This document shows, piece after piece, positions 42,351 to 64,000 of a DNA stretch of 64,000 nt. The notes under the pieces were generated by a model. It ran no database searches and was not told the DNA's origin. It saw only the letters and a list, made by a program, of their open reading frames with translations. The position numbers and the translations under genes were made by a program. The stretch covers positions 257,625-321,624 of IMG/VR virus record IMGVR_UViG_3300005613_000002. One strand, given 5' to 3'. Each line of letters starts with the position of its first letter. The first letter of the stretch is position 1.

Positions 42351-43151
42351 TTAATTATGCACAAATAGTATCTTTTTTATCTTCACAATTTTTTCATCAG
42401 GGAAATTTTTTATGAACTTCTTAACATATTTTGAATCAGCACTATATGATTTAGTTAAATCAATTTGTTGTGATAAATCCCTTCTTGTTGCAAATGCTCC
42501 CATATCTATATAACCATCATTAATGCGAGTATTAAAATGTTTATAGTTATATCCATTATGAATCATATCCCAATATATTAGACCAACTTTTTCATTACTA
42601 ATTATTTGATTTAACTCACTAATAAATGTTGGGACATAATAATTATCATCACCTGTTAAAATTATATAATCACTACTACTTGCTTGTTTTCCAATATTTC
42701 TTGGTGTATGACCCCAATCATTATATCTTTTTCCTAAAAACATATAATGAATATTTTTCGAATCAAATTTAGAAACAATATCTTTAACTCTATTATTTTC
42801 CACATCATCTACAACAATTGTTGCTTTCCAATTATCATCAATTTGTGCTACTAATGATGATAATATTACATATAATTGTTTTACCCTATTATAGGTTGGA
42901 ATAATAAATTCAATAGTCGATGGTTTGGTTGTGACAGTATTAGAATCAAACACTAAACCTCTTTCCTTAACAACAATATGTTTCGTAACATTATCTTCAA
43001 TATAATCAACAATTAAAACCTTGCGAATATTTTTATTAGTATCACCAAATGTATCGTTGTTTGCATGAATTTTTTTATTAGAATTAACTAAAGTTTGTAA
43101 TTTTTTACTCACATCAACACCACCATATTTTGCTTTAATAATTTTAATCAT
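42351..43151 (-). CDS. GT2 glycosyltransferase with N-terminal SUEL/Gal-lectin-like domain
   Basis: N-term IKAKYG...ANNDTFGD...KVLIVDY; then IIPTYNR, VVDD, RNIG, TGDDNYY. Confidence 0.85.
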   Translation of the reverse strand: MIKIIKAKYGGVDVSKKLQTLVNSNKKIHANNDTFGDTNKNIRKVLIVDYIEDNVTKHIVVKERGLVFDSNTVTTKPSTIEFIIPTYNRVKQLYVILSSLVAQIDDNWKATIVVDDVENNRVKDIVSKFDSKNIHYMFLGKRYNDWGHTPRNIGKQASSSDYIILTGDDNYYVPTFISELNQIISNEKVGLIYWDMIHNGYNYKHFNTRINDGYIDMGAFATRRDLSQQIDLTKSYSADSKYVKKFIKNFPDEKIVKIKKILFVHN

Positions 43152-43160
43152 TCTTAAATA

Positions 43161-44033
43161 TTATTTAAACAAATACATATAATCAGCATGATTTCCCCAA
43201 TATGAATGATTTTTATAAGTATTGGTTTGTTTATATATTGAATTATGTGATGTAAAATGGACACCATGATTAATATGAATTGCTTCATTTTTACAATTCC
43301 ATTGATTTCTTTTTAATGTTTGAGTTTCAATCATACCACTATTTGTTCTTAATGCATTAGGCAATATACGTTCACAATGTTTAATCGCATCATTAAACCT
43401 CATAGTCATTTGATGAAACGGTTCATCATTTTGTCCTCTACGTTGCCATCCATTAGTGTTTATACCACCATAATTCATGTTAGTTAATACTTGACCATCT
43501 TCAAACTCTGGATAATCAAAATAACCTTCTGGATACATTACATCATGTTCTAAAAAAGAAACATATTCATAATTATTCATTTCTTCTGCATTATATAAAC
43601 ATTGCATAATCTGAAGCAACTGATTTAAATGAGATTGTGATGTATACCAACTCTTAATTTCATGGAAAGGATTATTAGGAATATGATTCCAAACACATGA
43701 TATAATATCTACTTTTTGTTCACTGGCTTTTTTTATTGTATCTAATGATTTATCAATTGCTGTATAAATTTTTGGTTTATTATTATTCGAATAAAATATA
43801 CCCAAACGGTTAGTGTTTAATTTTGGAATAGTTAATAAACTACCTTCTCTAACTTTTTCATTAAATTCAACACCATTAATTTCACCACTTATTTCAAGAA
43901 ATTTAACTTGATTAACTTTAGGGTCGCCAATAATTCTATTATCTGCACGTATTACTAATCTATTATTTATTATTCTTGACCGTATGGCAGATAAACAATC
44001 CTTATTACCGTATGTTGCTTTTGTTATTTTCAT
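43161..44033 (-). CDS. GT-A glycosyltransferase with N-terminal SUEL/Gal-lectin-like domain
   Basis: N-term ITKATYG...ADNRIIGDP...KFLEI; YVSFLEHDVMYP (DxD-like), HINHG. Confidence 0.7.
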   Translation of the reverse strand: MKITKATYGNKDCLSAIRSRIINNRLVIRADNRIIGDPKVNQVKFLEISGEINGVEFNEKVREGSLLTIPKLNTNRLGIFYSNNNKPKIYTAIDKSLDTIKKASEQKVDIISCVWNHIPNNPFHEIKSWYTSQSHLNQLLQIMQCLYNAEEMNNYEYVSFLEHDVMYPEGYFDYPEFEDGQVLTNMNYGGINTNGWQRRGQNDEPFHQMTMRFNDAIKHCERILPNALRTNSGMIETQTLKRNQWNCKNEAIHINHGVHFTSHNSIYKQTNTYKNHSYWGNHADYMYLFK

Positions 44034-44042
44034 ATTTTAAAA

Positions 44043-45014
44043 TTATAAAAGTACTGATTTTTTCCCAACTTTTTGAACATATTGATAATAATGCCAACTT
44101 GCTGTATTGGGTTTAATTTTCAAATTTTCATTATATGGCAATTTGTTCATATATGCAGATTTATAAAATAAACCACTTTTTGCATTAACAACACCAGCAT
44201 TATGGAATATGTTATATTTATACCATAAATTTTCACCTGATGAACCCCAACTAAATTGTAAATCATCATGACATACAGTTTCTTTACCCATTTTCCAAGC
44301 ATTCCACAAAACTGCCCACATATCTGAACACCAAATTTGTATAGTGTGATATGGTGGTTTTTTTTCTTCAGGATGTGCTTTCCTATATTCTTCGTCAGCA
44401 GCTACTTTTATTTTATTTAATTGTGTTATTTCTTTAAATAATTTTTCACTATCTTTTTCAACAGTATCCCAGAATTTCCAATCAATATCTTTTAAAATAT
44501 ATTGAGCACCAATAGCATTTAGTTCATTATCTTTAACTACTTGTTTATCAATATCAATAATTTCACACATTTTATCTAAAACATCAACACCTTTACCTAA
44601 AATATAGTCATGCGCAATATACCAACGAGTATCAGAACCATACCATTTATCATCATTTAAAAACTGTTCCCAATTAATTTTATTTTTAAATATTATATCA
44701 TTATCATGATAAAAAATTGCATCATTTTTTAATTCGGGTCTAGCTAACCAGTGTTGTTTTAATATATTTGGTCTGATAGATGAAGTATAATGTTTAGTTT
44801 CTCTAGTATCATTATAGAAAAACCAACGAACATATTTATAATGATTAGCGAGTTTTCGCCATTCTGGTGGAGTAACACCATCTTTAATTTGACATACAAT
44901 ATCAATATTATTTGGAAATATTCCCATTTCCAAAAAATTATTAATCATTACTTCAACCTGCCATGTATAATATGGTGTAGCAGGTTGAGCACAAACAAAT
45001 CTTAAATTTCTCAT
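44043..45014 (-). CDS. peptidyl O-glycosyltransferase-like protein (plant HPAT GT95 / SGT1 GT96-like)
   Basis: Collinear motifs YYTWQVEVM, Y...RP...Q, IFYHDNDIIF, IG, WCSDMWA, IFHNAG, FYKSAY. Confidence 0.68.
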   Translation of the reverse strand: MRNLRFVCAQPATPYYTWQVEVMINNFLEMGIFPNNIDIVCQIKDGVTPPEWRKLANHYKYVRWFFYNDTRETKHYTSSIRPNILKQHWLARPELKNDAIFYHDNDIIFKNKINWEQFLNDDKWYGSDTRWYIAHDYILGKGVDVLDKMCEIIDIDKQVVKDNELNAIGAQYILKDIDWKFWDTVEKDSEKLFKEITQLNKIKVAADEEYRKAHPEEKKPPYHTIQIWCSDMWAVLWNAWKMGKETVCHDDLQFSWGSSGENLWYKYNIFHNAGVVNAKSGLFYKSAYMNKLPYNENLKIKPNTASWHYYQYVQKVGKKSVLL

Positions 45015-45064
45015 ACTAATAAAATTATACTTTTTTTTTGACTGTTCAAAGTGTTTTATAAAAT

Positions 45065-46771
45065 TTAATTCACAAAAACAGTACCTGTTGAATGTACTTC
45101 ACCATCTATTTCTAATACCCATAAACGTGTAGTTGATATTATTACACCATTAACTTTTCCATCCCAAGGATTTTCAACATAATCATTTGTTCTTTGATAT
45201 AATAAACTACCATCTCTAGTAAATATTGACATTCTATGAACTGGATAACAATCTAAATTCCAAACCTCAAAATAATCATGAATTCCATCATTTAATGTTG
45301 GTGAAAAACCTTCAGGTACAAATATAACACAATCGGATGGTTCAGGAGGTCCTTCAGTAGTTGTTGGTGTAACACAATAACTCACATTAAATGTAATTGT
45401 TGCTGTATTACTCCAATTTGGATTATTATCTGTTCTAACTTGAAATTCAACAGTATCCACATATGAACCCGTCATTAATCCAGATGTTCTATAAAAAATA
45501 CGACTATCAAATTCAAATGGATATGGTATTATTTCATTTTCAACAATTGGCACTATCGCACCTTTGCTAAATTCACCATATTGTGGTAAAGTAGTTATTT
45601 TTATTGCATTAATTGAGTCACCATCATAATCGCTATATGGAAACCAACTAAGGTCTGGATATGATGATACTGATGATGAACATACCGTAATCCATCTAGT
45701 AATAGTAACTGTGTTATCATATGCAACTGGTGGTTGATTAACCCCACAATCAATAATATCATTGCAACAGGTAGTACAAATATCATCAATCCATTCTACA
45801 TCAAAAAATTCAAAACCTGAAGTCCCATATTTGTATGATGGTTCAATCGTACTACAAATTTTTATTCTAATACCATCAACATATCCACCATCATCTTCAA
45901 ATTCTACCCAACTTAATGAATTAGAACCACCACCAACTAAATAATACGTAATATATAATTCATCAAACGCTTCGTCTTCTAAATCATCATATGGAATATC
46001 TAATGTGTAACAATTAGCTAAATATATTGGTGGTTCAGTTGTTGTTGGTTCTATTGTTGTAGTTGTTGTAGGTTCTAATGTAGTTGGCTCAACAGTTGTT
46101 GTTGGCTCTGCTGTAGTTGTTGGTTCAACCGTTGTAGTTGATGAACAAATAACCTCAATCATTTTAGCAACAATATTTGTTGGATTATTAACATCTCTTA
46201 CAACTGCCCAATAAATACCATCTGATATAGCTAAATATGAATATGGATTAAGACCAACATCAAATGATGTTGTGTTTAATGCTTGAGATTCTGTTAAGCT
46301 TAAATAACTTCCAACTTCATAAACACCAGAACCACCATAATAATTTTCTAATATTACCTCAGATAAAAATGGTGTACATTCAAATCTTATATCATAGTCT
46401 ATTGGTGTTTGTGGTTCTACTGTCGTTGTTGGCTCAATTGTAGTTGTAGTTGGTGGTGTTACATTTGGGTCACACTCAATTGGGTCATATTCAATATTAT
46501 CATTAACTTGACTTTCATCAATTGAAATTTCTTCTATTTCATTAACATATAATATAAAAATACTCACTAAATTATTATATGTTGTAGCTGACATATATGA
46601 TAATTCATTATCATTAGGAATTGTATACTGAACACCATGATACGTAAAATATCCGTTAGCAATATCAGTTGCTGTTGGATATGTTTTAGGATATCCATCA
46701 TCAATAATTCCATCAGTTCTTTTTGTTACTGAAACATATAATGACCTTTTATATCCTGAATATTCTGACAT
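45065..46771 (-). CDS. virion fibre-like protein: shared N-terminal anchor, Thr-rich linkers, Ig/cadherin-like domain, T9SS type-B CTD
   Basis: MSEYSGYKRSL anchor; TTTVEP repeats; NQPPVAYD...ATITFNV; VPEGFSP..NDGIHDYF...IFTRDG...WDG. Confidence 0.7.
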   Translation of the reverse strand: MSEYSGYKRSLYVSVTKRTDGIIDDGYPKTYPTATDIANGYFTYHGVQYTIPNDNELSYMSATTYNNLVSIFILYVNEIEEISIDESQVNDNIEYDPIECDPNVTPPTTTTIEPTTTVEPQTPIDYDIRFECTPFLSEVILENYYGGSGVYEVGSYLSLTESQALNTTSFDVGLNPYSYLAISDGIYWAVVRDVNNPTNIVAKMIEVICSSTTTVEPTTTAEPTTTVEPTTLEPTTTTTIEPTTTEPPIYLANCYTLDIPYDDLEDEAFDELYITYYLVGGGSNSLSWVEFEDDGGYVDGIRIKICSTIEPSYKYGTSGFEFFDVEWIDDICTTCCNDIIDCGVNQPPVAYDNTVTITRWITVCSSSVSSYPDLSWFPYSDYDGDSINAIKITTLPQYGEFSKGAIVPIVENEIIPYPFEFDSRIFYRTSGLMTGSYVDTVEFQVRTDNNPNWSNTATITFNVSYCVTPTTTEGPPEPSDCVIFVPEGFSPTLNDGIHDYFEVWNLDCYPVHRMSIFTRDGSLLYQRTNDYVENPWDGKVNGVIISTTRLWVLEIDGEVHSTGTVFVN

Positions 46772-46786
46772 CTAATTCTTTTTATT

Positions 46787-46795
46787 TTAAATACT
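46787..46795 (-). promoter_or_regulatory. late promoter variant AGTATTTAA
   Basis: Within a ~30-nt leader identical to that at 51156-51185. Confidence 0.55.
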
Positions 46796-46817
46796 TTATT
46801 TATTATTATTAAAACAA

Positions 46818-48863
46818 TTATCCACAATTTACATATGATTCATTATTATCATAAGCACAATAACCCTCAGTTGTTAGGTTCTTCCACGCAGTATTATCAG
46901 TTACTTTTGTAATTGAATCACTATTAGCATACTGAGTTTCTGCTAAATTTTCAGACATCCAAACTTGTGTACCAATTTTAACTGTTGGATATACCCTACC
47001 ATTATTTCCAGTCATTGTACCAGTATCTGTTGAATCGTCTTTAATTAACCTTAATGACAGACCATACGCATATAACCATAATGATATATTTGATGTTCCA
47101 CTAAAATTTACTAATTGTAATGCTCTCGTGAACATTCCAAATTCAGTAGTTGATGAACCAAATATTCCAAACTCATTAAATTTTGTGAAATTTCCATTTA
47201 CTGTTTCTCTATGACCACCACCAAATGCTGTGAATCCATATTCATCAGTAGCACCAGCATTAGGTGTTAACCAATGAGTTAAACCAACTTCTTTAAGTTT
47301 ACCACCAGCAACGGTACTACCACTAGCATATGTTTCTAATGTTTGAAATTCTGCTTGTGTAGGTACATGCCATCCAGAAGGTGCGATATTTCTTACATCA
47401 TTAATTGCATATTGATTATATAAATAACCATAACATTTTACACTACTTGGCTCAACAGTTGTAGTTGGTTCTAATGTTGTAGTTGGTTCTAATGTTGTAG
47501 TTGGTTCTAATGTTGTAGTTGGTTCTAATGTCGTGGTAGGCTCAACCGTAGTAGTTGGCTCTAATGTAGTTGTTGTAATTCCAGTTTCACCACAACCAAC
47601 ATTATTATAATCATTATTAAACGCACACATAGCACCAGTCGTTAAACCTGACCAAGTTTCATCATTTTCAATAATTGATATTAAATCATTATTAGCATAC
47701 TGAGTTTCCGCTAAATTTTCAGATAAATATTCTTGTGTCCCAATACAAATTGTACCATAAACTTTCCCATCATTACCAGTATATGTGCTAGTTTCACCAC
47801 TACTTAATGTTGTTGAATCTTTAATTAATCTTATACCTAAACCATGATTTCTATCTACTCCAGCATACACATTTGATTGAGTATTAGATGCATAAGAAGT
47901 AATTGTCCAATTTTGTAATGGATATCCACTTCTAACAGTTGATGTCCATAATGACCCATTTTCAAGTAAATTCACAAAATCACCAGTTGAACCATCACGT
48001 CTACCACTACCAACTAATGTCATTCCATATTCATCAGTAGCACCAGCATTAGGTGTTAACCAATGGTCTAAACCAACTTCTTTAAGTTTACCACCAGCAA
48101 CACTACCACCACCAGCAAGTGCAACTAACACTAAATATTCAGCTTGTGTAGGTACATGCCATCCAGTATTAGCTAAATCTCTACTATCATTAATGGTATG
48201 ACCATTATACAAATAACCATATTCAACACAACCAACAAATGGTTCAACTGTTGTTGTAGGTTCTAATGTAGTTGGCTCAACCGTTGTAGTTGGTTCTAAT
48301 GTAGTTGGTTCAACCGTTGTAGTTGGCTCAACCGTTGTAGTTGGTTCAACCGTTGTAGTTGGTTCTAATGTAGTACTAGGTTCAACCGTAGTGGTTGGCT
48401 CTAATGTAGTACTAGGTTCAACCGTTGTAGTTGGCTCTAATGTAGTACTAGGTTCTACTGTTGTAGTTGGCTCTAATGTAGTAGTTACTGTGCCTGATTT
48501 TTCAATAACACAATTAAATAAATCCCATTCAGATTCAACACTAAATGTTGGTACAACACCCGAACAATTTTCAGGGTCATATTCAACATTATCATTACTG
48601 AATTCAGTACCAAATGATATATCTTCATAACTATTCACATAAGAAATAAAAACATCAACAAGATTATTATATTCGGTTTCTGACATATTTGCAAGTGTAT
48701 CATCATCAGGTATTGAATATTGGATACCATTAACAATAAAGTATCCATTATACACATCAGTTGGTAGTGGGTATATTTTAGGATACCCAACAGCAATATC
48801 ATCTCCAATCATTTTAGTGATTGAAACTTTTAGCGACCTTTTATATTCTGTGTATTGACTCAT
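46818..48863 (-). CDS. virion fibre-like protein with two circularly permuted FISUMP (Fib_succ_major) domains and Thr-rich linkers
   Basis: YGYLYN...GWHVPT...GGKLKE...RLIKD followed by GNDGKVY.T..IGTQ...ENL. Confidence 0.75.
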   Translation of the reverse strand: MSQYTEYKRSLKVSITKMIGDDIAVGYPKIYPLPTDVYNGYFIVNGIQYSIPDDDTLANMSETEYNNLVDVFISYVNSYEDISFGTEFSNDNVEYDPENCSGVVPTFSVESEWDLFNCVIEKSGTVTTTLEPTTTVEPSTTLEPTTTVEPSTTLEPTTTVEPSTTLEPTTTVEPTTTVEPTTTVEPTTLEPTTTVEPTTLEPTTTVEPFVGCVEYGYLYNGHTINDSRDLANTGWHVPTQAEYLVLVALAGGGSVAGGKLKEVGLDHWLTPNAGATDEYGMTLVGSGRRDGSTGDFVNLLENGSLWTSTVRSGYPLQNWTITSYASNTQSNVYAGVDRNHGLGIRLIKDSTTLSSGETSTYTGNDGKVYGTICIGTQEYLSENLAETQYANNDLISIIENDETWSGLTTGAMCAFNNDYNNVGCGETGITTTTLEPTTTVEPTTTLEPTTTLEPTTTLEPTTTLEPTTTVEPSSVKCYGYLYNQYAINDVRNIAPSGWHVPTQAEFQTLETYASGSTVAGGKLKEVGLTHWLTPNAGATDEYGFTAFGGGHRETVNGNFTKFNEFGIFGSSTTEFGMFTRALQLVNFSGTSNISLWLYAYGLSLRLIKDDSTDTGTMTGNNGRVYPTVKIGTQVWMSENLAETQYANSDSITKVTDNTAWKNLTTEGYCAYDNNESYVNCG
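47450..47578 (-). repeat. 18-bp coding tandem repeat (TTTLEP units)
   Basis: GTAGTTGGTTCTAATGTT repeated in tandem from 47461. Confidence 0.9.
48241..48487 (-). repeat. 15/18-bp coding tandem repeat (TTT[VL]EP/STTLEP)
   Basis: In-frame repeat tract within the 46818-48863 ORF. Confidence 0.9.
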
Positions 48864-48884: not shown

Positions 48885-51155
48885 TTATGCATTATTTTCA
48901 ACATCATCATAAGCACATAAAGCACTTGTTGTTAATGCATCCCAAGTACTATCACCTATTGGTGTATAAACACCACCATCATAACCATCTATCCATGAGT
49001 TATTTCTCCATTGAGTTTCTTTTAAATTATCAGCAAGCCATTCTTGTGTTCCAATACAAATAGTTCTATATAATTTACCATCATTTCCTTGATAAGTACC
49101 TGATTCACCATGTGATAATGTCGTAGAATCTTTAACTAATCTTATACAATTACCTATTTTTTTAAATTGTGTTATAAATGATGAAACACCTAACCATACT
49201 CTAAAAACTATGGTATTATGGTATAATTCGCCAAAAAATGCTTGTGTTGTATCATATGGGTTTTCTGTTGTTGTCCATAAATTTGAAAATTCATACTTCC
49301 CATTATATGCACCACCACTAAATCTTTGTCCACTACCCCTTGCATTAAAACCATAAGTGTTTGTAGCACCAATATTTGGGTTTTCCCAATGTGTTAACCC
49401 TGTTTCTTTTAAATGTCCACTTGCATCATTAACATCTCTAGTACCATCAGGGTCAATATATAACAATAATGTACCTAATTCATCATTAGTTGGGACATGC
49501 CATCCAGTATTTGCTATATTTCTAGCATCATCAACTGTTAACCAATTATATAGAAAACCTAAATTAACTGTTTCAATTGGTTGGACTGTTGTTGTACCAG
49601 TAATTGGCTCTAATGTAGTTGTTGTACCAGTAATTGGCTCAATCGTTGTGGTAGTTGGCTCTAATGTAGTTGTTGGCTCAATCGTTGTGGTAGTGACACC
49701 ACTATCAATAATACAAACATAATCTAACCAACTACCAAAATATGTTGTTTCACCAGTAAAACATGGCTCAACTGTGGCTTTAACACAGGTGAATGGTTCA
49801 TCACATGTGTTTAATGCATAATCAATTGGACAAACATATCCATGATATCCATTAGTTGCTGAATATTCATAATGTAATGCTGTACCAACTAAATCAATAG
49901 AATCAAATATTTTCTTATCGCCTAAATCTTCATCACTAGTTGCATTTATTAAATCATATGGAGTTGCATCATATATATGAATACCAACACCAGCAACATT
50001 AGTTTCATTATGACCAATAACTTCAATAAAATTTTCACCTGCTGGTAATTCAATTGGATAAATAAACCAATATCTAAAAGGTATTCTTCCAGTATCTCCA
50101 CCACCAGTTGGGTCACCATTTGCTGCAAACATAGTTGCTAGTGCTGAAATATCTTGTTCAAGAATTAAACTACCATTTAGTTTGACTTTACCTAAATTAT
50201 CACAACCAAAACCTACATAATATGTTTTAGGTACTGCAATATTAAAACAAAAAGAAAAACCAATATCTTGATTATCACGAGTCACATTACCCCAAACACA
50301 TGAACGATTTAAAGGTCCTTCTAATGAAGGATATGGTGTATTTATCCAATATTGATTACTTGTTGGTATCCTCTCATAATCACCAGTACCATCATAATTC
50401 CAATCATCGAAAATTACTGCGCCATAGAGACCATAAGAAGAATGTTCTGCTTTTCTAACTACAGTATATGTTGAAGAATAATATGTTGGGTCAATTGTCT
50501 CATAAAGCACACAATCATCACCAATTGGTGTATAACCTTCTTCACATGTTTCACACCATGATAAATTTTCAAATCTACTACAATCAGGAATACCTAAATC
50601 AGTAAATACAATTTGATATTCATCACCTATTGGTACATCAGTAAAATAATTAGTTATAGGTGTTGTGTGTTCAAGATTAGTCCCAATAACACCACCAGAA
50701 CTACCAATTAATTCAACCATAATTGAACCAGTTCCACTTGTTAGCGTGTATGAAACAGTAACAGTACTCCCACTAAATTCATGCGGTAATATCGTATAAT
50801 TAATATTACATACTGGTGCTAATGTTGTGCTTGTAGTTGTTGGTGTTTCACCACTACAATTTATTGGGTCATATTCTACATTTACATTAATTTCATCATC
50901 AATAAATGACACATTTTCAATATCTTCAACATATGATTCAAATGCTGACACTAATTCATTATAATCAGTATCTGACATATATGATAATTCATTATCATCA
51001 GGAATTGGATATTCTTCATAATTATATATGAAATACCCACGAGCAATATCAGTTGCAGTTGGGTATGTTTTAGGATATCCAACTATAACCTCACCACCTA
51101 TAGCTTTCGTAACCGAAACATATAACGACCTTTTATATCCTGAATATTCTGACAT
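48885..51155 (-). CDS. virion fibre-like protein: shared anchor, Cys-flanked beta-sandwich (PA14-like) domain, permuted FISUMP domain
   Basis: MSEYSGYKRSL anchor; VGFGCDNLGKVKLNG; LGFLYN...RLVKD...GNDGKLYRTICIGTQEW. Confidence 0.72.
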   Translation of the reverse strand: MSEYSGYKRSLYVSVTKAIGGEVIVGYPKTYPTATDIARGYFIYNYEEYPIPDDNELSYMSDTDYNELVSAFESYVEDIENVSFIDDEINVNVEYDPINCSGETPTTTSTTLAPVCNINYTILPHEFSGSTVTVSYTLTSGTGSIMVELIGSSGGVIGTNLEHTTPITNYFTDVPIGDEYQIVFTDLGIPDCSRFENLSWCETCEEGYTPIGDDCVLYETIDPTYYSSTYTVVRKAEHSSYGLYGAVIFDDWNYDGTGDYERIPTSNQYWINTPYPSLEGPLNRSCVWGNVTRDNQDIGFSFCFNIAVPKTYYVGFGCDNLGKVKLNGSLILEQDISALATMFAANGDPTGGGDTGRIPFRYWFIYPIELPAGENFIEVIGHNETNVAGVGIHIYDATPYDLINATSDEDLGDKKIFDSIDLVGTALHYEYSATNGYHGYVCPIDYALNTCDEPFTCVKATVEPCFTGETTYFGSWLDYVCIIDSGVTTTTIEPTTTLEPTTTTIEPITGTTTTLEPITGTTTVQPIETVNLGFLYNWLTVDDARNIANTGWHVPTNDELGTLLLYIDPDGTRDVNDASGHLKETGLTHWENPNIGATNTYGFNARGSGQRFSGGAYNGKYEFSNLWTTTENPYDTTQAFFGELYHNTIVFRVWLGVSSFITQFKKIGNCIRLVKDSTTLSHGESGTYQGNDGKLYRTICIGTQEWLADNLKETQWRNNSWIDGYDGGVYTPIGDSTWDALTTSALCAYDDVENNA

Positions 51156-51189: not shown

Positions 51190-54100
51190 TTATATTTCTA
51201 ATGTTGTTGTAGGTTCTAATGTTGTCGTAGGCTCAACAGTGGTTGTTGGCTCTACTGTTGTTGTTACCGCATCAACAATTATACAATTATATAAATCCCA
51301 TTCAATTTGCGCTTCTGTTGGAAGTGTTGTTGTAGGTTCTACTGTTGTAGTAGTTCCAGTAATTGGTTCTAATGTCGTTGTTGTCGTAGGTTCAACTGTT
51401 GTAGTTGGAACAGGACAATCCATTTTAAAATACCAACCAACACCAGTTAAATATAATTCAACCATTGCTATAGTTGTTGATGTTGATTTATAAAATTCAT
51501 TAATACCAGAACTATCTGTAATTACCACAGGATAACCATCTGGTTCTAATTCTGGGTCACCAATATTCGGATAAATGAATGTTGATGTTGGGTCTAATTT
51601 ACCTGTTAATGCATTAGTAAATATATTTCTTGCTGATTCACCATAACCATACGCTGCATCACCAACAAAACCACTATCAATTTCGGTATTATTATCATAT
51701 TTCACAATAAATCTATCAGGATAACCACTCACATCATAATTAAAGACAATATTTCCAGTATCTGAACCTAAATCAATTTCATAAATATTTTTATATCCAA
51801 CTTCACCACCATCATATTCTACTAAATCACCACATAATGCATCATATATTGGTTGAACTGTAGTTGTTGGTTCAACCGTTGTGGTAGGTTCTAATGTAGT
51901 ACTAGTAATAGCACTAACAACAATACAACTATAATCAATCCATTCATAAGTCACAGTATCACCAATTGTGGTTGTAGTTGGCTCTAATGTTGTTGGCTCA
52001 ATTGTAGTTGTAGGTTCAACTGTTGTAGTTGGCTCACAAGGAATTAAATCTGCTTTAACACAGGTAAATGGTTCGTCACATGTATTTAACGAATATCCAC
52101 TTGGACAAACATATCCATGATATCCAAAATCATCAGAATTCTCATAATGTATAGGTGTTGTTGGGTTAGTAACTAATTGGTCTGATGTAAATAATATTTT
52201 TTCACCCAAATCTTCATCACTAGTTGCATTTTCTAAATCATAAGGTGTTGCATCATATATCTGAATACCAACTGCTGCAACACTATATTCGTTATGACCA
52301 TAAATTTCGATCACATTCTTACCAGCAGGTAGATGCATTGGATAAATAAACCAATATCTATAAGGTATTCTATCAGGGAAACCACCACCAGTTGGGTCAC
52401 CATTTGCCGTAAACATAGCAGTTAATGATGGAATATCTTGCTCAAGAACCATCTCACCATTAAGTTTTATTTTTCCCCAATTATCACAACCAAAACCTAC
52501 ATAATATGTTTTGGCAACAGCAATATCAATACAATATGAAAAACCAATATCTTGTTTATTTCGTGTTACATTACCCCAAATAGATGTACGATTTAAAGGT
52601 CCTTGGTCACTATATGGGTTTACCCAATATGGATTACTTAAATCAAATCTACTATAATTTCCAGTACCATCATAATTCCAACTATCAAATAATACAGCAC
52701 CATAAACACCATATGATGTATCATCAGTTTTTTTAACAACATAATATGATGAAGCATAATATGTTGGGTCAATTACATCATAAAGAACACATTCATCATC
52801 ACCAACTGGGTCATATCCTTCTTCACATGTTTTACACCATGATATAATCTCAAGAGCATTACAACTTGGGTCATTTAATTCTGTGAAAGACATCAAATAA
52901 TCATCATTAAATGGTACATTAAGAAATGAATAAACACCAGTACTATATGCTATGTTAGAATAATAACTAGTACCAGTTTCACCAGATAGTTGAACAACCA
53001 TTGGGAATGTACCACTAGTTATTTCATAAAATATATTAACACTATTTCCACTAAACTCATATGGTAATATTGAATAATTTATATTACATACTGGTTCAAT
53101 AGTCGTTGTTGTATCAACAACAATACAACTATAATCAATCCATTCATAGGTTACACTATCACCAACCGTTGTAGTAGGTGCTACCGTAGTTGTAGGTTCA
53201 ACTGTTGTAGTTGGCTCAATTGTAGTTGTTGGCTCTAATGTAGTACTAGTAATAGCACTAACAACAATACAACTATAATCAATCCATTCATAGGTTACAC
53301 TATCACCAACTGTAGTCGTTGGCTCAACTGTTGTAGTTGGCTCTAATGTAGTACTAGGTTCAACCGTTGTAGTTGGTTCTACTGTAGTCGTTGGCTCAAC
53401 TGTTGTAGTTGGCTCTAATGTAGTACTAGGTTCAACCGTTGTAGTTGGTTCAATCGTAGTACTAGGTTCAACCGTTGTAGTTGGTTCTACTGTAGTCGTT
53501 GGCTCTAATGTCGTTGGTTCAATCGTAGTACTAGGTTCAACCGTTGTCGTTGGTTCTACCGTAGTACTAGGTTCAACCGTTGTAGTAGTAGGTTCTACCG
53601 TAGTACTAGGTTCAACCGTTGTAGTAGTAGGTTCTACCGTAGTACTAGGTTCTAATGTCGTAGTAGTAGGTTCTACCGTAGTAGTAGGTTCTAATGTCGT
53701 AGTAGTAGGTTCTACCGTAGTAGTAGGTTCTAATGTCGTTGTTGTACTAGTAGTTGTTGGCTCTAGTGTAGTTGTTGTACTAGTAGTTGTTGGCTCTAGT
53801 GTAGTTGTTGTGGTTGTATCTCCCGGACATGGAGGACAGCATGGACATGGAATTAAACTACCAAACATAGTCATTTCATAATCAGGAATAGTCCAAGACC
53901 TATTTGACTTATATGACATAGCAAACAATAATTCTTGGTCTTCGATAATAAACATTTTTAGTGTATTAAACACTTTTCCAACAATGTTACCATCTAAATC
54001 AGCTAAATCATAATATCTAACATCTAATGATTTTACTGTGCCTGTTAATATTTTACTACTTCCTGTTGGTATTAAAGTAATACCTAATGTTCTAGTGCTT

Positions 54101-55128
54101 GATTTATGCCACATAATTGTTGGCATTTCAAGTTTAGGTGTTTTTAAATAAAATTCCTCACCATAAACATTTTTATCCGAATCATTACTATAATGAATTA
54201 CACCTAATTTTTTATAAACAGGTGCTTGATTTTGAATATATGAAACAAAACCACCATATGTTCTAGTTTCAAAATTACCATATTTTATATCAGTAGCTTG
54301 AACACCTGCAACTTCTTCTGTATATATCACAGATAAATCCCAAAATGGAAATATTGTATTATTGGTATTATAATTAGCAAAATAACTAATAATACTATCA
54401 GCACTATAATCACCAGTAAAACTATAATTTGATGATACACCGCTATAATATATTAGTGCACCAGCAATTGCAGTTGGTGTGTATAATGAAAAATCTGGCA
54501 ATTCTCTATCAACATTAACAACAATATTATCATTCAATAAATTACCAGTTTTACTAATAATTTTATATGTTAAATATGGTGTAGGTAAATCCCTATTAAT
54601 TGTATGTCCAGTAGTATTAGTATCATGAGCATATTTAATAAACAACAAATCCCCAACTAAAGGTTCTTCAGTATTTGAACCATATGTTGGTGCTTTTCTT
54701 AAAGATATTGAATTCCCACCTGTAACACCACTCATATACACCATTAAATCAGGCTGTCTAGTGTGTAATTCATCAGTAATAAATGTTGTTCCACTATCAC
54801 TAAAAAAACCTAAAGAATGTGCATCATTAACTATATCATATGGTTCAGATATTGGTTTAATTTCATTATATTCATCACCTTCATATGTTTTTGGAATAAA
54901 TGAAATTATTTTAGGGTTTTTATCTCTAGGTCTTAAAATACTAATGTCTGAAGAATTGAAATCTGGTTCAACACTAGTATTAATTTCATTAATAAAGTTA
55001 TAATCAATCTCACTATCGCCAACAGCAAAGTATTTAAACGTTAAATCACCCTTAGATAGTTGTTCTCTACCTTTGGATGTCAACATTATATTTAATACTA
55101 CAGGGTCTGTCTTTTCAATGAGTGCCAT
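51190..55128 (-). CDS. large baseplate/fibre-associated protein with long mucin-like Thr-rich region
   Basis: N-term LNIMLTSKGREQLSKG...YFAVGDSEIDY (collar-like); about 170 aa TT[VLI]EP tract; PA14-like and PDRFIV modules; AGTATTTAT at 55143-55151. Confidence 0.7.
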   Translation of the reverse strand: MALIEKTDPVVLNIMLTSKGREQLSKGDLTFKYFAVGDSEIDYNFINEINTSVEPDFNSSDISILRPRDKNPKIISFIPKTYEGDEYNEIKPISEPYDIVNDAHSLGFFSDSGTTFITDELHTRQPDLMVYMSGVTGGNSISLRKAPTYGSNTEEPLVGDLLFIKYAHDTNTTGHTINRDLPTPYLTYKIISKTGNLLNDNIVVNVDRELPDFSLYTPTAIAGALIYYSGVSSNYSFTGDYSADSIISYFANYNTNNTIFPFWDLSVIYTEEVAGVQATDIKYGNFETRTYGGFVSYIQNQAPVYKKLGVIHYSNDSDKNVYGEEFYLKTPKLEMPTIMWHKSSTRTLGITLIPTGSSKILTGTVKSLDVRYYDLADLDGNIVGKVFNTLKMFIIEDQELLFAMSYKSNRSWTIPDYEMTMFGSLIPCPCCPPCPGDTTTTTTLEPTTTSTTTTLEPTTTSTTTTLEPTTTVEPTTTTLEPTTTVEPTTTTLEPSTTVEPTTTTVEPSTTVEPTTTTVEPSTTVEPTTTVEPSTTIEPTTLEPTTTVEPTTTVEPSTTIEPTTTVEPSTTLEPTTTVEPTTTVEPTTTVEPSTTLEPTTTVEPTTTVGDSVTYEWIDYSCIVVSAITSTTLEPTTTIEPTTTVEPTTTVAPTTTVGDSVTYEWIDYSCIVVDTTTTIEPVCNINYSILPYEFSGNSVNIFYEITSGTFPMVVQLSGETGTSYYSNIAYSTGVYSFLNVPFNDDYLMSFTELNDPSCNALEIISWCKTCEEGYDPVGDDECVLYDVIDPTYYASSYYVVKKTDDTSYGVYGAVLFDSWNYDGTGNYSRFDLSNPYWVNPYSDQGPLNRTSIWGNVTRNKQDIGFSYCIDIAVAKTYYVGFGCDNWGKIKLNGEMVLEQDIPSLTAMFTANGDPTGGGFPDRIPYRYWFIYPMHLPAGKNVIEIYGHNEYSVAAVGIQIYDATPYDLENATSDEDLGEKILFTSDQLVTNPTTPIHYENSDDFGYHGYVCPSGYSLNTCDEPFTCVKADLIPCEPTTTVEPTTTIEPTTLEPTTTTIGDTVTYEWIDYSCIVVSAITSTTLEPTTTVEPTTTVQPIYDALCGDLVEYDGGEVGYKNIYEIDLGSDTGNIVFNYDVSGYPDRFIVKYDNNTEIDSGFVGDAAYGYGESARNIFTNALTGKLDPTSTFIYPNIGDPELEPDGYPVVITDSSGINEFYKSTSTTIAMVELYLTGVGWYFKMDCPVPTTTVEPTTTTTLEPITGTTTTVEPTTTLPTEAQIEWDLYNCIIVDAVTTTVEPTTTVEPTTTLEPTTTLEI
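53310..53817 (-). repeat. longest coding Thr-rich tandem tract
   Basis: Continuous (T/S)TT[VLI]EP units, 15-21 bp period. Confidence 0.92.
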
Positions 55129-59383: not shown

Positions 59384-59833
59384 TTATGTATTTTTTACAA
59401 TATTAAAATAATTTCCACCTGCATACGTATTCAAATCATTTAAATTTTTCACATATTCAAGTCTATAATTATTTTCAAAGGCAGATAATTCTTGTCTTAT
59501 AATAAATACATCATCATTAATTTTTGGCTCACTAATTATATTTTCCTTATTTGGGTCTTTATAATATGGAACATTAATGAAATTTAATGTATTTCCAGTT
59601 CCCAATGGTGTGTATACAGTATATGTCATTCCAGAAGATTCACCAGAAATTTCATCAACATATTTAATACCACCAATATAATAAATTATACGAGTTGTTT
59701 CAATTGAATTTCCATAATCAACACCATCATTATTAATATCACCATTAGCTACATATTTATTTAAAAAAACATTAGTTATAGTGTATTTACGTAATTCACT
59801 TAGTCTACTTATTGATGTGCCAGTAATTTCCAT
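59384..59833 (-). CDS. putative virion structural protein
   Basis: 149 aa inside the baseplate cluster. Confidence 0.5.
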   Translation of the reverse strand: MEITGTSISRLSELRKYTITNVFLNKYVANGDINNDGVDYGNSIETTRIIYYIGGIKYVDEISGESSGMTYTVYTPLGTGNTLNFINVPYYKDPNKENIISEPKINDDVFIIRQELSAFENNYRLEYVKNLNDLNTYAGGNYFNIVKNT

Positions 59834-59842
59834 TTCAAATTA

Positions 59843-61105: not shown

Positions 61106-61109
61106 TTTA

Positions 61110-63098
61110 TTATATTGTTGGTATATGTATAAATAATGTGTTAACTGTTGGACTTGGTGCTAATGTTGTCGTTGTTGTAGTCCCTGTTGGTGCTAATGTT
61201 GTCGTTGTTGTGGTCACAATTGGTGTGTCAGGGCAAGACATAATATAATTCCATGCTGTACCATTCATTGGTGCATAAACTTCAATTCTGGCAGTTTGTG
61301 TTATTGTATTTTTATTAAAACTATCATTACCTGATGGACTTCCATCAATCCAAGGATAACCATCTGGAGCATAATTTAAATTACCAACATCTGGATATGT
61401 CACACCTAATATTGGGTCAACTTTACCAGTTAATGAATCCGTAAATCTTACTCTATTTAACCCACCATAATTAAAATAAGAATCACCTCTATAACCAGTA
61501 TCAATTACTGTATTATTATCAAAGAAGACAATAAACCTATCTGGAATTCCAATAGCATTGTATTCTAATATTACATTACCACCATATTGACCCAAGAATA
61601 CGTTTTGTGTTGTAGGATAACTAATTCCACCACTAAATGAAGTTGAATCATCACACTGAATTAACCCAGATGTTGTTGGTGGTACTGGTTCTAATGTTGT
61701 GGTAGTTGTTGTTGGTTCTAATGTCGTTGTTGGACAAGGTGGGCAAGGAGGACATTCTTTTAAACCACCAAAACCTCCAACACCATAATCAGGAAGCGTC
61801 CAAGACCTATTTGATTTATATGATATGGCATTTAATATTTCTTGGTCTTCTATAACAAAGACCTTTAAACCAATAAACACTTTTCCAATAATATTTAAAT
61901 TATCATCAGCTAAATCATAATATTCAATATCTAATGATTTTGTTTCACCAGTTAATATTTTAACATCACCAGTAGCCTTAAACATCGCACCTAATGTCCT
62001 TGTGCTTGATTTATGCCACATAATTGTTGGTAAGTTTAGTGTTGGTGTGTCTGAATGAAATTCTTCACCATAGACATTAGCTGGTGAACTATTTGTATAA
62101 TGGATTAAACCTAATTTTTTATAAACAGGTGCTTGATTTTGAATATATGAGACAAAACCACCAACTGTTCTACTTTTAAATTGCCCAAAAACTTTATCTC
62201 CTGCTTGAATACCTGCAACTTCTTCAGTAAAAATTACATGCATGTTCCAATAAGGGAACACATCAATTGGATATTGATAATTAGCTATAAATTGTAATAC
62301 TTCATCACTTAAATAATCAGTTGAATATTCATGTTGATATGTTAATCCACTATAATATACTAGTGCACCAGCAATTGCAGTTGGTGAATATAAAGTAAAG
62401 TCTGGTAATTCTCTATCTACTTGAACCAATAAATCATCATTATTAGTATCACCACTCACACCAGCAATACGGTACATTAAATGTGCTGTTGGTAGTGTTT
62501 TATTTATTATATGTCCAGTAGTATCAGTATCTTGAGTATACTTAATAAACAATAAATCATTAATTGCTGGCTCATATCCGCTTGTTCCAAAAGTCGGTGC
62601 TTTTCTTAGTGATATTAAATCACCACCTGTGACTCCACTCATATATACCATTAAATCAGGTTGTTTAACATGTAAACCATCAGTAAGATATGTTGTTATT
62701 GTTTCATCGAAAAACCCTAAAGAAACAGCAGATGTTGTCGCAGTATATCCAGTTCCAAGTAAAATTGCTGTAGTTGCACTTGTACCAGTAGTTGCTGTTG
62801 TTCCAGTAATAATCTCAATATAACCATCAGTATTTCCTGTAGTACCAGTATCACCAGTAATTGGAATTATCGATAAAATCTTAGGATTCTTGTCTTTTGG
62901 CTTTAAAATACTTGAATCAACAGAATTATAATCTGGGTCAATTTCATCATTAATCTCATTAATAAATTCATAATCGATTTCACTATCACCAAGTGCTAAA
63001 TATTTAAACGTTAATTCACCCTTAGATATTTGCTCCCTACCTTTAGATGTTAACATTATATTTAATAAAACCGTTTCTTTCCTATCAATGAATGCCAT
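61110..63098 (-). CDS. shorter paralog of the 51190-55128 baseplate/fibre-associated protein
   Basis: Same N-terminal ~450 aa, CPPCP hinge, Thr-rich linker, PDRFIV module; AGTATTTAT at 63114-63122. Confidence 0.7.
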   Translation of the reverse strand: MAFIDRKETVLLNIMLTSKGREQISKGELTFKYLALGDSEIDYEFINEINDEIDPDYNSVDSSILKPKDKNPKILSIIPITGDTGTTGNTDGYIEIITGTTATTGTSATTAILLGTGYTATTSAVSLGFFDETITTYLTDGLHVKQPDLMVYMSGVTGGDLISLRKAPTFGTSGYEPAINDLLFIKYTQDTDTTGHIINKTLPTAHLMYRIAGVSGDTNNDDLLVQVDRELPDFTLYSPTAIAGALVYYSGLTYQHEYSTDYLSDEVLQFIANYQYPIDVFPYWNMHVIFTEEVAGIQAGDKVFGQFKSRTVGGFVSYIQNQAPVYKKLGLIHYTNSSPANVYGEEFHSDTPTLNLPTIMWHKSSTRTLGAMFKATGDVKILTGETKSLDIEYYDLADDNLNIIGKVFIGLKVFVIEDQEILNAISYKSNRSWTLPDYGVGGFGGLKECPPCPPCPTTTLEPTTTTTTLEPVPPTTSGLIQCDDSTSFSGGISYPTTQNVFLGQYGGNVILEYNAIGIPDRFIVFFDNNTVIDTGYRGDSYFNYGGLNRVRFTDSLTGKVDPILGVTYPDVGNLNYAPDGYPWIDGSPSGNDSFNKNTITQTARIEVYAPMNGTAWNYIMSCPDTPIVTTTTTTLAPTGTTTTTTLAPSPTVNTLFIHIPTI

Positions 63099-63133
63099 TG
63101 TTTATTTTTTTATATAAATACTTAATTAATTAT

Positions 63134-64000
63134 TTATATAGGCAAGACTTGTATTATCATACTTTGTAAATCACTATTTTTGACTGATGAAAAACTATAT
63201 GTTGGTGTAACACCATCAGATGGTTGTTTAATTACTTCCACACTATAACGATTTCTATTACCAGAATTTAGACCTTGAATTCTTATCCAACCTAATTTTG
63301 ATTCATTAATACCTGTACCTGAAAATTCTGTAGGGTCAAGAATATTAGTCTTAAACACTACTTCTAATGAGTTAGTTATTCCACTAGCCAATGATGCTTC
63401 TAATGTTGAAGTAGTGTGTGCACTATATGAATAATTTTCAGATGTAACAGTTGAGAAATATGGTGCTGATGTCTTTCCTAATATTGTAACTTTTGTACCC
63501 CAACAAGCACTTGCTGTCCCAAAGTTCATAGTTGATGTTGGACTTGATAAATCACTAGCTTCAACAATTTTCCACCATAAAGATAAACTAGGTAAATCAC
63601 TATCGCTTTCAACTTTTTTAATTAATGTCCAACTACCAGATGGGTCTGAAATTGTTGTGTTATTAACGCAACCAACAAATAAAAACATAATTTCACCAAC
63701 TGTTGCACCCGATGGTGTTACAACATCAATTGAACTAACTGGTGTAACTATATCAGTATCTGATGATGTCATTACTGCTGGTGTTCTACTTAGAAAATCT
63801 AATTCAAGTATTTCCTGTTGAATATCACACTCTAATGTTGTAGGTGCTACCGTTGTAGTAGGTTCTAATGTAGTTGGCTCAACCGTTGTAGTTGGTTCAA
63901 CTGTTGTAGTTGGTTCTAATGTAGTTGGTTCAACTGTTGTAGTTGGTTCTACCGTTGTAGTAGGTTCTAATGTAGTTGGCTCAACCGTTGTAGTTGGTTC
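63134..64000 (-). CDS. 3' part of another Thr-rich virion protein (start beyond window end)
   Basis: Frame of track ORF 63134-63772 stays open to 64000 through ...TTVAPTTLECDIQQ...; C-terminal beta-sandwich with PSG..GE...SWTL...LWWK pattern. Confidence 0.75.
   Translation of the reverse strand, partial: EPTTTVEPTTLEPTTTVEPTTTVEPTTLEPTTTVEPTTTVEPTTLEPTTTVAPTTLECDIQQEILELDFLSRTPAVMTSSDTDIVTPVSSIDVVTPSGATVGEIMFLFVGCVNNTTISDPSGSWTLIKKVESDSDLPSLSLWWKIVEASDLSSPTSTMNFGTASACWGTKVTILGKTSAPYFSTVTSENYSYSAHTTSTLEASLASGITNSLEVVFKTNILDPTEFSGTGINESKLGWIRIQGLNSGNRNRYSVEVIKQPSDGVTPTYSFSSVKNSDLQSMIIQVLPI
63830..64000 (-). repeat. coding Thr-rich tandem repeat, truncated by window end
   Basis: TTTVEP/TTLEP units. 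Confidence 0.88.

Follow-up and report, generated by a model that had tools for sequence, protein, structure and literature searches.

The analysed stretch of DNA, referred to here as the window, comprises 64,000 nucleotides of the IMG/VR virus record IMGVR_UViG_3300005613_000002 (positions 257,625 to 321,624), and all of its genes from 38.7 to 64 kb lie on the minus strand. Six ORFs in this region carry threonine-rich tandem tracts, and three genes predicted to encode GT-A-fold glycosyltransferases follow directly, after gaps of 50, 9 and 9 bp. Features are listed in the table and named by their first coordinate, while L-numbers denote individual viral loci or contigs in our comparisons.

Features of the Thr-tract and glycosyltransferase region (window coordinates)
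Coordinates	Strand	Length (aa)	Description
41564..42310	-	248	Conserved gene of unknown function directly after the transferase cassette; also follows the cassette in the jumbo relative L002 (58% identity)
42351..43151	-	266	GT2-family enzyme with the same type of N-terminal domain as 43161; lineage-specific extra transferase
43161..44033	-	290	N-terminal beta domain of roughly 75 aa plus predicted GT-A catalytic domain (residues ~76-290); frequent partner of 44043 and proposed extending enzyme
44043..45014	-	323	Predicted soluble GT-A glycosyltransferase of phrog_4417; proposed initiating polypeptide Thr-O-glycosyltransferase
45065..46771	-	568	Thr-tract modular protein; tracts at residues 100-122 and 208-249; C-terminal CHU_C / T9SS type-B domain
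46818..48863	-	681	Thr-tract modular protein with TTT[VL]EP units and two FISUMP modules
48885..51155	-	756	Thr-tract modular protein; one FISUMP module; central module paralogous to 51190
51190..55128	-	1312	Thr-tract modular protein; six tracts, the longest at residues 431-610; N-terminal roughly 440 aa shared with 61110 and with the ORF that precedes the 44043 homologue in L002
55176..61105	-	1063, 301, 149 and 420	Four genes without Thr tracts between the Thr-tract genes, the last protease-like (phrog_20754); three conserved and syntenic in L002; presumed virion or baseplate block
61110..63098	-	662	Thr-tract protein, paralogue of 51190
63137..64000	-		3' part of a further Thr-tract ORF that runs off the window end; tract encoded at 63831-64000

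The first-pass annotation of this region had described six late virion-type ORFs with (T/S)TT[VLI]EP tracts between globular domains, followed by three glycosyltransferase genes, and this observation is confirmed with regard to the tracts and the three genes. We counted 5 [TS]TT[VLI]EP units in 45065, 19 in 46818, 4 in 48885, 38 in 51190, 2 in 61110 and 5 in the frame open from 63137 to the window end, giving 73 in total. Automated ORF calling starts the last of these at an internal ATG at 63772. However, the frame is open to base 64000 and its tract lies at 63843-64000, so that its earlier description as a partial ORF was right. Tandem Repeats Finder detected arrays with periods of 18 and 36 bp at 46038-46140, 47458-47575, 48241-48483, 51197-51264, 53324-53811 and 63831-64000, with 63-91% matches. 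The repeats are therefore diverged and maintained at the protein level. In contrast, none of 135 ORFs of at least 60 aa in window positions 1-42000 has 7 or more Thr in any 12 residues, and given this background we reject chance as an explanation for the tracts.

The tracts sit at the junctions of shuffled globular modules. A 100-aa N-terminal domain is shared by 45065, 46818 and 48885 at 56-66% identity, the N-terminal domains of 51190 and 61110 are 59% identical, and a module of roughly 400 aa is shared by 48885 and 51190 at 58%. However, searches against PHROG, Pfam and PDB with the globular parts of the Thr-tract ORFs and with 55176, 58451 and 59384 found no structural family, and a tblastn search of 55176 against cultured phages gave a single weak hit to an unannotated 484-kb uncultured phage. 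Thus, that the six ORFs are virion proteins is inferred from their size, modularity and synteny and from what the equivalent proteins are in other phages. No signal peptides were found, as the first-pass annotation had stated for the fibre-like proteins, and no membrane segments either; all three transferases lack membrane segments as well. No terminator-like site was found on the minus strand between 40 and 56 kb, while a sigma-70 promoter scan performed no better than shuffled sequence (102 sites against 119.5 expected).

Of the three transferases, only 42351 was identified by sequence. It matches PF00535 at 45.1 bits against a cutoff of 23.3 (E 1.4e-11, residues 82-209), with PDB hits to chondroitin synthase and PglI-type enzymes. 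Sequence searches of 44043 and 43161 against Pfam, NCBIfam and PDB returned nothing useful, and both were recognised only through AlphaFold models and Foldseek. The model of 44043 has a pLDDT of 95.9 and gave 139 PDB matches at E<=1e-3, of which the 50 listed are all glycosyltransferases of GT-A-fold families with probability 1.0. Top hits are WbbM, the UGGT catalytic domain, Skp1 alpha-galactosyltransferase, XXYLT1 and glycogenin, at E 4e-6 to 1e-4. Across 32 homologues D104 and D106 (DxD) are invariant and H103 is nearly invariant. However, TM-scores are modest (0.45-0.52), so that neither donor nor acceptor can be read from the fold. Sequence-level membership in GT8 or a related retaining clan is not supported, since no Pfam family was hit even at E 10 and no PDB sequence at E 1; there is only fold resemblance to the retaining GT8, GT24 and GT77-type structures. 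The label "HPAT/SGT1-like" proposed in the first-pass annotation could not be confirmed, as no family-level hit was obtained in Pfam, NCBIfam or PDB, libraries that may contain no HPAT/SGT1 model or structure, so that the absence of a hit does not exclude a remote relation.

The model of 43161 has a pLDDT of 91.0 and matches BoGT6a, SpsA, B4GALNT1 and GnT-I at E 8e-7 to 3e-5. Residues E162, H163 and D164 are invariant among its homologues and may occupy the DxD position, although this is inferred without superposition. The N-terminal domains of 43161 and 42351 are related to each other (E 0.002; 35% identity over the N-terminal 46 aa of 42351), and the model of 43161 shows a small beta domain. 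The first-pass annotation had called both enzymes lectin-GT fusions. This rests on phmmer E-values of 0.27 and 0.05 over 27 residues to a single rhamnose-binding lectin (5h4s), without a Pfam hit even at E 10, and the label could likewise not be confirmed.

The decisive evidence is comparative. The protein encoded by 44043 matches phrog_4417, a family listed as "unknown function" with 972 clusters at 50% identity, at E 1.5e-58 over profile positions 2-291 of 293, while phiFL1A gp51 and the homologue of Chryseobacterium phage MA9V-3 match at 4e-156 and 2e-78. The co-occurrence of Thr tracts with the transferase trio had been set as a test beforehand, and it supports the central idea in a different form. 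Of 44 dereplicated viral loci with a 44043 homologue, 33 have a Thr-tract ORF immediately upstream on the same strand. Thr-tract ORFs make up 46 of 71 ORFs in the 3 kb upstream against 1 of 251 in the 10 kb downstream (Fisher p 3e-36, not corrected for relatedness; the loci are related to each other, so that counts overstate the number of independent events). Members of about half of the exception clusters (L005, L018, L021, L022, and L048, L052 and L058 of the L034 cluster) have a small protein with a T5-9 [EA]AP tail 3-10 kb upstream, and L056 has a Thr-tract ORF downstream on the other strand. The pairing also holds in 2 of 2 informative genome loci and in all 11 cultured phages sampled from the 77 phage records with a homologue; these 11 infect Enterococcus, Lactococcus, Lactobacillus, Staphylococcus, Clostridium and Chryseobacterium and carry poly-Thr tails or tracts on capsid, tail-tube or decoration proteins near this gene. 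Together these phages have all genome sizes and infect at least two host phyla.

The carriers are not homologous to each other, and only the tract is common. They comprise fibre-like modular proteins, major tail proteins (phrog_1407 in L024; phiFL1A gp50; VPE25; bIL285 orf50; phiCTP1 ORF18), major head proteins (phiFL1A gp45; the capsid/protease ORF10 of 1706) and Ig or decoration proteins. In Lactococcus lactis phage 1706 and Lacticaseibacillus phage R9.1 the same T7-10 tag ends two different structural proteins (in 1706, ORF10 and ORF13 both end in T9-10-HHD). The Lactobacillus plantarum phages Bacchae and LP65 also carry phrog_4417, and the annotation of LP65 records its tract-bearing ORF51 as a structural protein found by 2-D gel and MS.

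In contrast to 44043 alone, the trio is not a conserved unit. A 43161 homologue follows the 44043 homologue in 46 of 80 loci at 52-69% identity, and fusions of the two exist (proteins P0122 and P0168). A 42351-type GT2 catalytic domain was found outside the source contig in only one of these loci (L022, 46% identity over 191 aa, without the N-terminal domain), while the closest jumbo relative uses GT32-like, methyltransferase-like and GT2 genes instead. Between or after the homologues of 44043 and 43161, other phages carry SAM-methyltransferase-like genes, further GT2 genes and a GT32-like gene, as expected for glycan elaboration.

The reverse association is weak. Of 60 arbitrary viral stretches with a T4xxPT4 ORF and at least 3 kb downstream, only 7 carry a 44043 homologue. 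Thr linkers are thus far more common in phages than this enzyme, and they therefore do not need it or use others. Pfam scans of ten genes downstream of Thr-tract ORFs in contigs without the enzyme gave two peptidoglycan-binding, endolysin-like proteins and one PF11397 transferase, and BLAST clustering extended the endolysin-like group to eight of the 39 neighbours compared.

These numbers leave room for the view that the tracts are plain, unmodified flexible linkers, while the transferases act on host envelope glycans or their lipid-linked precursors (superinfection exclusion or receptor masking) or on phage DNA bases. Phage transferases are classically DNA or O-antigen modifiers (reviewed in PMC12619734), 42351 resembles polysaccharide GT2 enzymes, and phage VPE25 does glucosylate its DNA (PMC4999554). 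However, the glucosylation of VPE25 is attributed to a separate T4 beta-glucosyltransferase-like gene, although the same work discussed a second sugar-enzyme-like ORF, which may or may not be the phrog_4417 gene, as a possible DNA modifier (PMC4999554). Furthermore, this view does not explain why the enzyme sits beside a Thr tract so often, whatever protein carries the tract. In small temperate siphophages such as phiFL1A, bIL285 and R9.1 the gene lies inside the head-tail morphogenesis operon, and no base-hypermodification genes were seen in the stretches read there, albeit without a dedicated search. Because of this position we reject DNA glycosylation as the main role, and we consider this alternative as a whole unlikely.

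One might also argue that the linkage is one of mobility, with Thr-linker fibre genes and the cassette travelling together as an exchangeable accessory block whose transferases decorate other sites or other virion proteins. The cassette lies at the boundary between the structural and DNA-metabolism modules in the window, its content is variable, and homing endonucleases are inserted nearby (HNH in L052, a GIY-YIG-like gene upstream in PT1-4). In addition, the 44043 protein is unusually conserved (58-72% identity) across contigs of very different size, which suggests horizontal spread. However, the carriers include core, non-exchangeable proteins (major capsid, tail tube) that merely gained a poly-Thr tail. 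In Firmicutes phages the enzyme is only 25-31% identical to that of the window (35% in the Chryseobacterium phage), which argues for long co-residence rather than a recent shared cassette, and we regard this scenario as improbable. Even less likely appears a third possibility, in which the host's own machinery modifies the tracts and the phage enzymes only trim or extend host-made glycans. Bacteroidota possess a general O-glycosylation system, and the FISUMP and CHU_C domains, together with Chitinophagaceae and Flavobacteriaceae MAG hits, point to a Bacteroidota host. However, that pathway is periplasmic while the Thr-tract proteins have no signal peptide, and the same pairing occurs in Firmicutes phages.

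Taken together, we consider it probable, though far from certain, that the locus encodes a cytoplasmic O-glycosylation module for threonine tracts of virion proteins. In this model the fibre-like genes and the three transferase genes would be read leftward as one late unit. 44043 would transfer a first sugar from a host nucleotide-sugar to Thr hydroxyls in the TTT[VL]EP repeats of the newly made proteins. 43161 and 42351 would extend that sugar, with the small shared beta domain possibly holding the primed glycopeptide, and the product would be a set of mucin-like, extended, protease-resistant linkers between the binding modules (FISUMP and others). Several of the nearest structures of 44043 act on proteins or protein-linked glycans (glycogenin, UGGT, Skp1 AgtA and XXYLT1). 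What our analysis establishes are the tracts, the three enzymes with a GT-A-type assignment and without membrane segments, their tight spacing, and the cross-phylum genomic linkage of 44043 homologues with poly-Thr proteins. In contrast, transferase activity, glycosylation itself, the acceptor, the order of action, the sugar and the physical role are inferred, and no glycan, mass shift or activity has been observed for any member of the family. The interpretation given in the first-pass annotation is thus partly supported: 44043 as initiating enzyme fits the data, while the conserved partner of the tracts is this single enzyme rather than the trio, and the stiff-stalk role remains inference.

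A broader reading, which we hold to be slightly more likely than not, is that phrog_4417 represents a previously unrecognised, widespread family of phage polypeptide threonine-O-glycosyltransferases, occurring in phages of Bacteroidota and Firmicutes from 36-kb temperate siphophages to 320-kb jumbo phages. A poly-Thr tail or linker would then act as a portable glycosylation tag that can be appended to any virion protein, be it capsid, tail tube, decoration or fibre, while variable partner transferases and methyltransferases diversify the glycan, and bacterial viruses would have their own mucin-type glycosylation. Virion glycosylation in phages is known experimentally only from a few mycobacteriophages, where it shields particles from antibodies, and our literature searches found no paper linking poly-Thr tracts or phrog_4417 to phage glycosylation, which does not prove that none exists. 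If the pairing is one of enzyme and substrate, glycosylated virions are common and would occur in dairy and gut Firmicutes phages and in abundant freshwater and Bacteroidota phages. This would give a function to a large family now listed as unknown and explain why poly-Thr tails recur on unrelated structural proteins. It would also bear on phage stability, adsorption, mucus adherence and immune recognition, which is relevant to phage therapy, and offer a compact cytoplasmic tag-and-transferase pair for glyco-engineering.

Among known systems, the virion glycosylation of mycobacteriophages Che8, Corndog and Myrna (Freeman et al. 2023, as cited in PMC12363180 and PMC12619734) likewise involves phage-encoded cytoplasmic transferases thought to decorate capsid and tail-tube subunits. 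In the Firmicutes phages with a 44043 homologue the putative targets are also the C-termini of major capsid and major tail proteins, and a GT2 with a sugar methyltransferase appears in both systems. However, the enzymes belong to different families. By Pfam, Che8 gp108-110 are GT2+methyltransferase, GT2 and GT25-like, only 42351 shares the broad GT2 family, and gp110, the one compared, shows no relation to the profile of 44043 (hhalign probability 0.1). The Che8 genes lie at the far end of the genome and not beside the targets, the Che8 capsid and tail C-termini are not poly-Thr, and no mycobacteriophage appears among the 77 phage records with a 44043 homologue.

Eukaryotic mucin-type O-glycosylation by polypeptide GalNAc-transferases resembles the proposed module in its dense Thr/Pro tandem-repeat acceptors, in a GT-A initiating enzyme followed by extending enzymes, in an accessory non-catalytic domain fused to a GT-A domain, and in the expected extended bottle-brush linker. 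This is a functional analogy, as there is no sequence or family relation and none of the three enzymes has a GT27 catalytic or ricin-type lectin domain by Pfam. Here the accessory domain is N-terminal and not a ricin-type lectin, and the site would be the bacterial cytoplasm instead of the Golgi. In the glycosylation of serine-rich-repeat adhesins of Gram-positive bacteria (GtfA/GtfB, then GT8- and GT2-type extenders), long Ser/Thr repeats of a surface fibre are O-glycosylated in the cytoplasm before export or assembly, the transferase genes are clustered with the substrate gene, and the set of extending enzymes varies. There, however, the initiator is a GT-B (GT4) pair, whereas the proposed initiator here is a GT-A enzyme and the substrate is phage-encoded without an export signal. 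Finally, PF11397, named "Glycosyltransferase (GlcNAc)" in Pfam, corresponds to GT60-type polypeptide GlcNAc-transferases (the Skp1 GlcNAc-transferase family). It is a different family from phrog_4417 and absent from the window. Yet it was found directly after poly-Thr ORFs in other phage contigs (L134, L188, L201, L106), where it looks like a parallel, independently evolved solution to the same task.

The window belongs to a 321.6-kb viral contig, IMGVR_UViG_3300005613_000002, with about 27% GC, and its left 40 kb encode replication and repair functions, namely an SF1 helicase, a Thg1-like enzyme, RNA and DNA ligases, an Mre11/Rad50-like fusion, an exonuclease and a RuvC-like resolvase. The Thg1-like tRNA-His guanylyltransferase and the two ligases lie close together and may form an RNA or tRNA repair set, although no tRNA genes occur in the window. 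The fusion is a single 1137-aa ORF which combines a calcineurin-like phosphoesterase domain with a weak Rad50 zinc-hook match (E 1e-4, below the Pfam cutoff), as in an SbcCD or Mre11-Rad50 fusion, while a second exonuclease is encoded 3 kb away. From 38.7 kb to the end of the window every gene is on the minus strand.

Within this part, six ORFs carry (T/S)TT[VLI]EP tracts: 45065, 46818, 48885, 51190, 61110 and the frame open from 63137 to the window end. Together they hold 73 strict units, 38 of them in the 1312-aa product of 51190, and the tracts are encoded by diverged tandem repeats of 18 and 36 bp. None of 135 ORFs in the first 42 kb of the window has anything comparable. The observation made in the first-pass annotation, threonine-rich tracts in six ORFs followed by three glycosyltransferase genes, holds. 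The tracts lie at the joints between globular modules that are shuffled among the paralogues. A 100-aa N-terminal domain is common to 45065, 46818 and 48885, a roughly 440-aa N-terminal domain is common to 51190 and 61110, and a roughly 400-aa module is common to 48885 and 51190, while FISUMP modules occur in 46818 and 48885 and a CHU_C / T9SS type-B sorting domain ends the product of 45065. None of these proteins has a signal peptide or a membrane segment. A host-type (Bacteroidota) secretion domain seems to have been co-opted as a distal module in 45065, and together with the FISUMP modules and hits to metagenome-assembled genomes (MAGs) of Chitinophagaceae and Flavobacteriaceae this points to a Bacteroidota host. 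A virion role of the six proteins is plausible, yet searches for homology revealed no structural family that would demonstrate it. The presumed structural block also contains a protease-like protein of 420 aa, for which no homolog was found in any of the 80 viral loci compared below, including the jumbo relative L002.

The three enzymes encoded next to these ORFs differ in how they can be recognized. 42351 is a clear GT2 (PF00535), whereas 44043 and 43161 have no sequence-level family apart from phrog_4417, listed as 'unknown function', for 44043. However, with alignments of homologs, AlphaFold gave confident models for both (pLDDT 95.9 and 91.0). Based on its model, 44043 is a predicted GT-A enzyme with an invariant DxD motif, and its nearest structures are WbbM, the UGGT catalytic domain, Skp1 alpha-galactosyltransferase, XXYLT1 and glycogenin. 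The C-terminal 215 residues of 43161 are likewise predicted to be GT-A, nearest BoGT6a, SpsA and GnT-I. In addition, 43161 and 42351 share a small N-terminal beta domain. The first-pass annotation had described both as lectin fusions, but this label rests only on E-values of 0.05-0.27 to one rhamnose-binding lectin and is unproven. The three genes follow the last Thr-tract gene after gaps of 50, 9 and 9 bp, and no terminator-like site was found on their strand.

To examine whether Thr-tract proteins and these enzymes co-occur, as the first-pass annotation had proposed, we compared further loci that encode homologs of 44043 (hereafter GT1). More than 2500 close homologs were found in metagenomes, typically 62-72% identical, and the family comprises 972 clusters at 50% identity. 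Eighty viral loci were retrieved, and after dereplication at 90% identity 44 clusters had upstream sequence. In 33 of these, the ORF immediately upstream on the same strand is a Thr-tract protein. Thr-tract ORFs are 46 of 71 ORFs in the 3 kb upstream, 6 of 78 and 8 of 138 further upstream, and only 1 of 251 downstream. The tract-bearing proteins are neither homologous to those of the window nor to each other, and one of them is a major tail protein (phrog_1407). Several exceptions, from a group of phages with contigs of about 58-69 kb, have a small protein with a T5-9 [EA]AP tail some kilobases upstream, and one of these, in locus L048, carries a DUF7936 domain. In the roughly 57-69-kb contigs of this group, a DUF6165 protein of about 125 aa takes the place directly upstream of GT1 instead of a Thr-tract protein (locus L005, with homologs in L006, L018, L020, L021 and L023). 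Two bacterial MAG contigs (Chitinophagaceae, Flavobacteriaceae) repeat the pattern of a Thr-tract protein next to GT1.

This pairing is consistent with what is found in cultured phages. Distant homologs of GT1 (25-35% identity) occur in 77 cultured-phage records, and all 11 that we examined have poly-Thr tails or tracts on structural proteins within 6 kb. In phiFL1A these are the major head protein gp45 and the major tail protein gp50, with the transferase gp51 directly after gp50. In VPE25 and bIL285 it is the major tail protein, and in phiCTP1 a head protein and the tail tube. The others are Lactococcus phage 1706, with ORF10 (capsid/protease) and ORF13 (major structural protein), R9.1 with two such proteins, the Lactobacillus phages Bacchae, 521B and LP65, where ORF51 is annotated as a structural protein found by 2-D gel and MS, Staphylococcus phage PT1-4 with T7VEP repeats, and Chryseobacterium phage MA9V-3. 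Two different structural proteins of the same phage end in the same tag, T9-10-HHD in 1706 and T7-9-SHV in R9.1, while bIL285 has T9-RHD on its major tail protein; this looks like a portable C-terminal tag. In PT1-4 the T7VEP repeats are in an ORF that overlaps the 3' end of the preceding ORF, which itself ends in poly-Thr. This may be a programmed frameshift that adds a longer tract to a fraction of subunits.

While GT1 is constant, its partners are not. A homolog of 43161 follows GT1 in 46 of 80 loci, whereas a 42351-type enzyme was found in one other locus only. Single proteins that fuse the 44043-type and 43161-type domains exist as well (P0122, 687 aa; P0168, 622 aa; P0232, 574 aa), and 69 of the 150 listed representatives of the 44043 family are 480-620 aa, with an uncharacterized C-terminal extension. 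Between the two conserved genes, other phages insert methyltransferase-like genes, further GT2-like genes or a homing endonuclease. The nearest jumbo relative (L002, a 246-kb contig, syntenic over the whole block) has GT1 followed by GT32-like, methyltransferase-like and GT2 genes in place of 43161 and 42351, and it lacks the 45065, 46818 and 48885 paralogues. Thus GT1 is the constant and the rest is variable, which is what one expects of an initiating enzyme plus a diversifying glycan-extension set.

Coordinates of features in the window and in the loci compared (E, E-value of the family match; the strand is given for features of the window from 38.7 kb onward)
Sequence	Position	Strand	Feature
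Window	10509-11309, 12648-13670, 14517-15917		Thg1-like tRNA-His guanylyltransferase (E 1e-26), RNA ligase and ATP-dependent DNA ligase
Window	32315-35728		Calcineurin-like phosphoesterase domain with weak Rad50 zinc-hook match
Window	38763-40256	-	Second exonuclease (phrog_704)
Window	40332-40640	-	GIY-YIG homing-endonuclease-like gene
Window	45065-46771	-	Thr-tract ORF; CHU_C / T9SS type-B domain at residues 484-558 of the product
Window	59843-61105	-	Protease-like protein (phrog_20754, E 3e-21)
Window	63137 to window end	-	Open frame with Thr tract
L002 (nearest jumbo relative)	11004-13065		GT32-like gene (PF04488), methyltransferase-like gene and GT2 gene after GT1
L005	9620-9991		DUF6165 protein directly upstream of GT1
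L085 (Staphylococcus phage PT1-4)	4469-5017 and 4956-5207		Overlapping ORFs with poly-Thr end and T7VEP repeats
L086 (Lactococcus phage 1706)	2468-4525 and 5235-5972		Two structural proteins ending in T9-10-HHD
L134	3461-4372		PF11397 gene directly after poly-Thr ORF (E about 1e-36)
L188	8152-9063		PF11397 gene directly after poly-Thr ORF (E about 1e-36)
L201			PF11397 gene directly after poly-Thr ORF
L106			PF11397 gene directly after poly-Thr ORF
L215 (R9.1)	4882-5931 and 8282-8938		Two structural proteins ending in T7-9-SHV

In the reverse direction the association is far weaker. An arbitrary sample of 120 viral stretches matching a T4-x-x-P-T4 coding pattern shows that Thr linkers are much commoner than GT1, which is present in 16 of 116 stretches overall and in 7 of 60 where at least 3 kb downstream is available. 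However, four of the stretches (L134, L188, L201 and L106) carry a different transferase, PF11397 'Glycosyltransferase (GlcNAc)', right after the poly-Thr ORF, in contigs where no GT1 was found in the stretch examined; the match has E about 1e-36 in L134 and L188, the two that were scanned. Consequently, Thr tracts do not imply GT1, but GT1 very strongly implies a neighboring Thr tract, and a second, independent transferase family shows the same habit.

Taken together, the most likely reading, which we hold with moderate confidence, is a phage-encoded cytoplasmic system that O-glycosylates threonine tracts of virion proteins, in which 44043 would be the initiator and 43161 and 42351 would act as extenders. 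The interpretation given in the first-pass annotation is partly supported. While the tracts, their arrangement and the genomic linkage with GT1 were observed directly, the transfer activity itself, the acceptor, the sugar and the physical role are inferred. We found no paper describing this link in the collection of literature that was searched. In this view, the system works like mucin-type or serine-rich-repeat glycosylation without belonging to those families.

An alternative role for such enzymes would be the modification of phage DNA. For VPE25, however, DNA glucosylation is attributed to a T4 beta-glucosyltransferase-like gene (PMC4999554), which leaves the phrog_4417 gene in its structural module unexplained by that role. 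With respect to virion glycosylation, the known system is that of mycobacteriophage Che8, which citing papers describe as experimentally shown (PMC12363180). There, the transferases are GT2+methyltransferase, GT2 and GT25-like, and gp110, the one we compared, is unrelated to GT1. Furthermore, the Che8 genes lie 50 kb from the capsid gene, and the capsid and tail C-termini are not poly-Thr. The present module is therefore a different enzyme family with a different kind of inferred acceptor.
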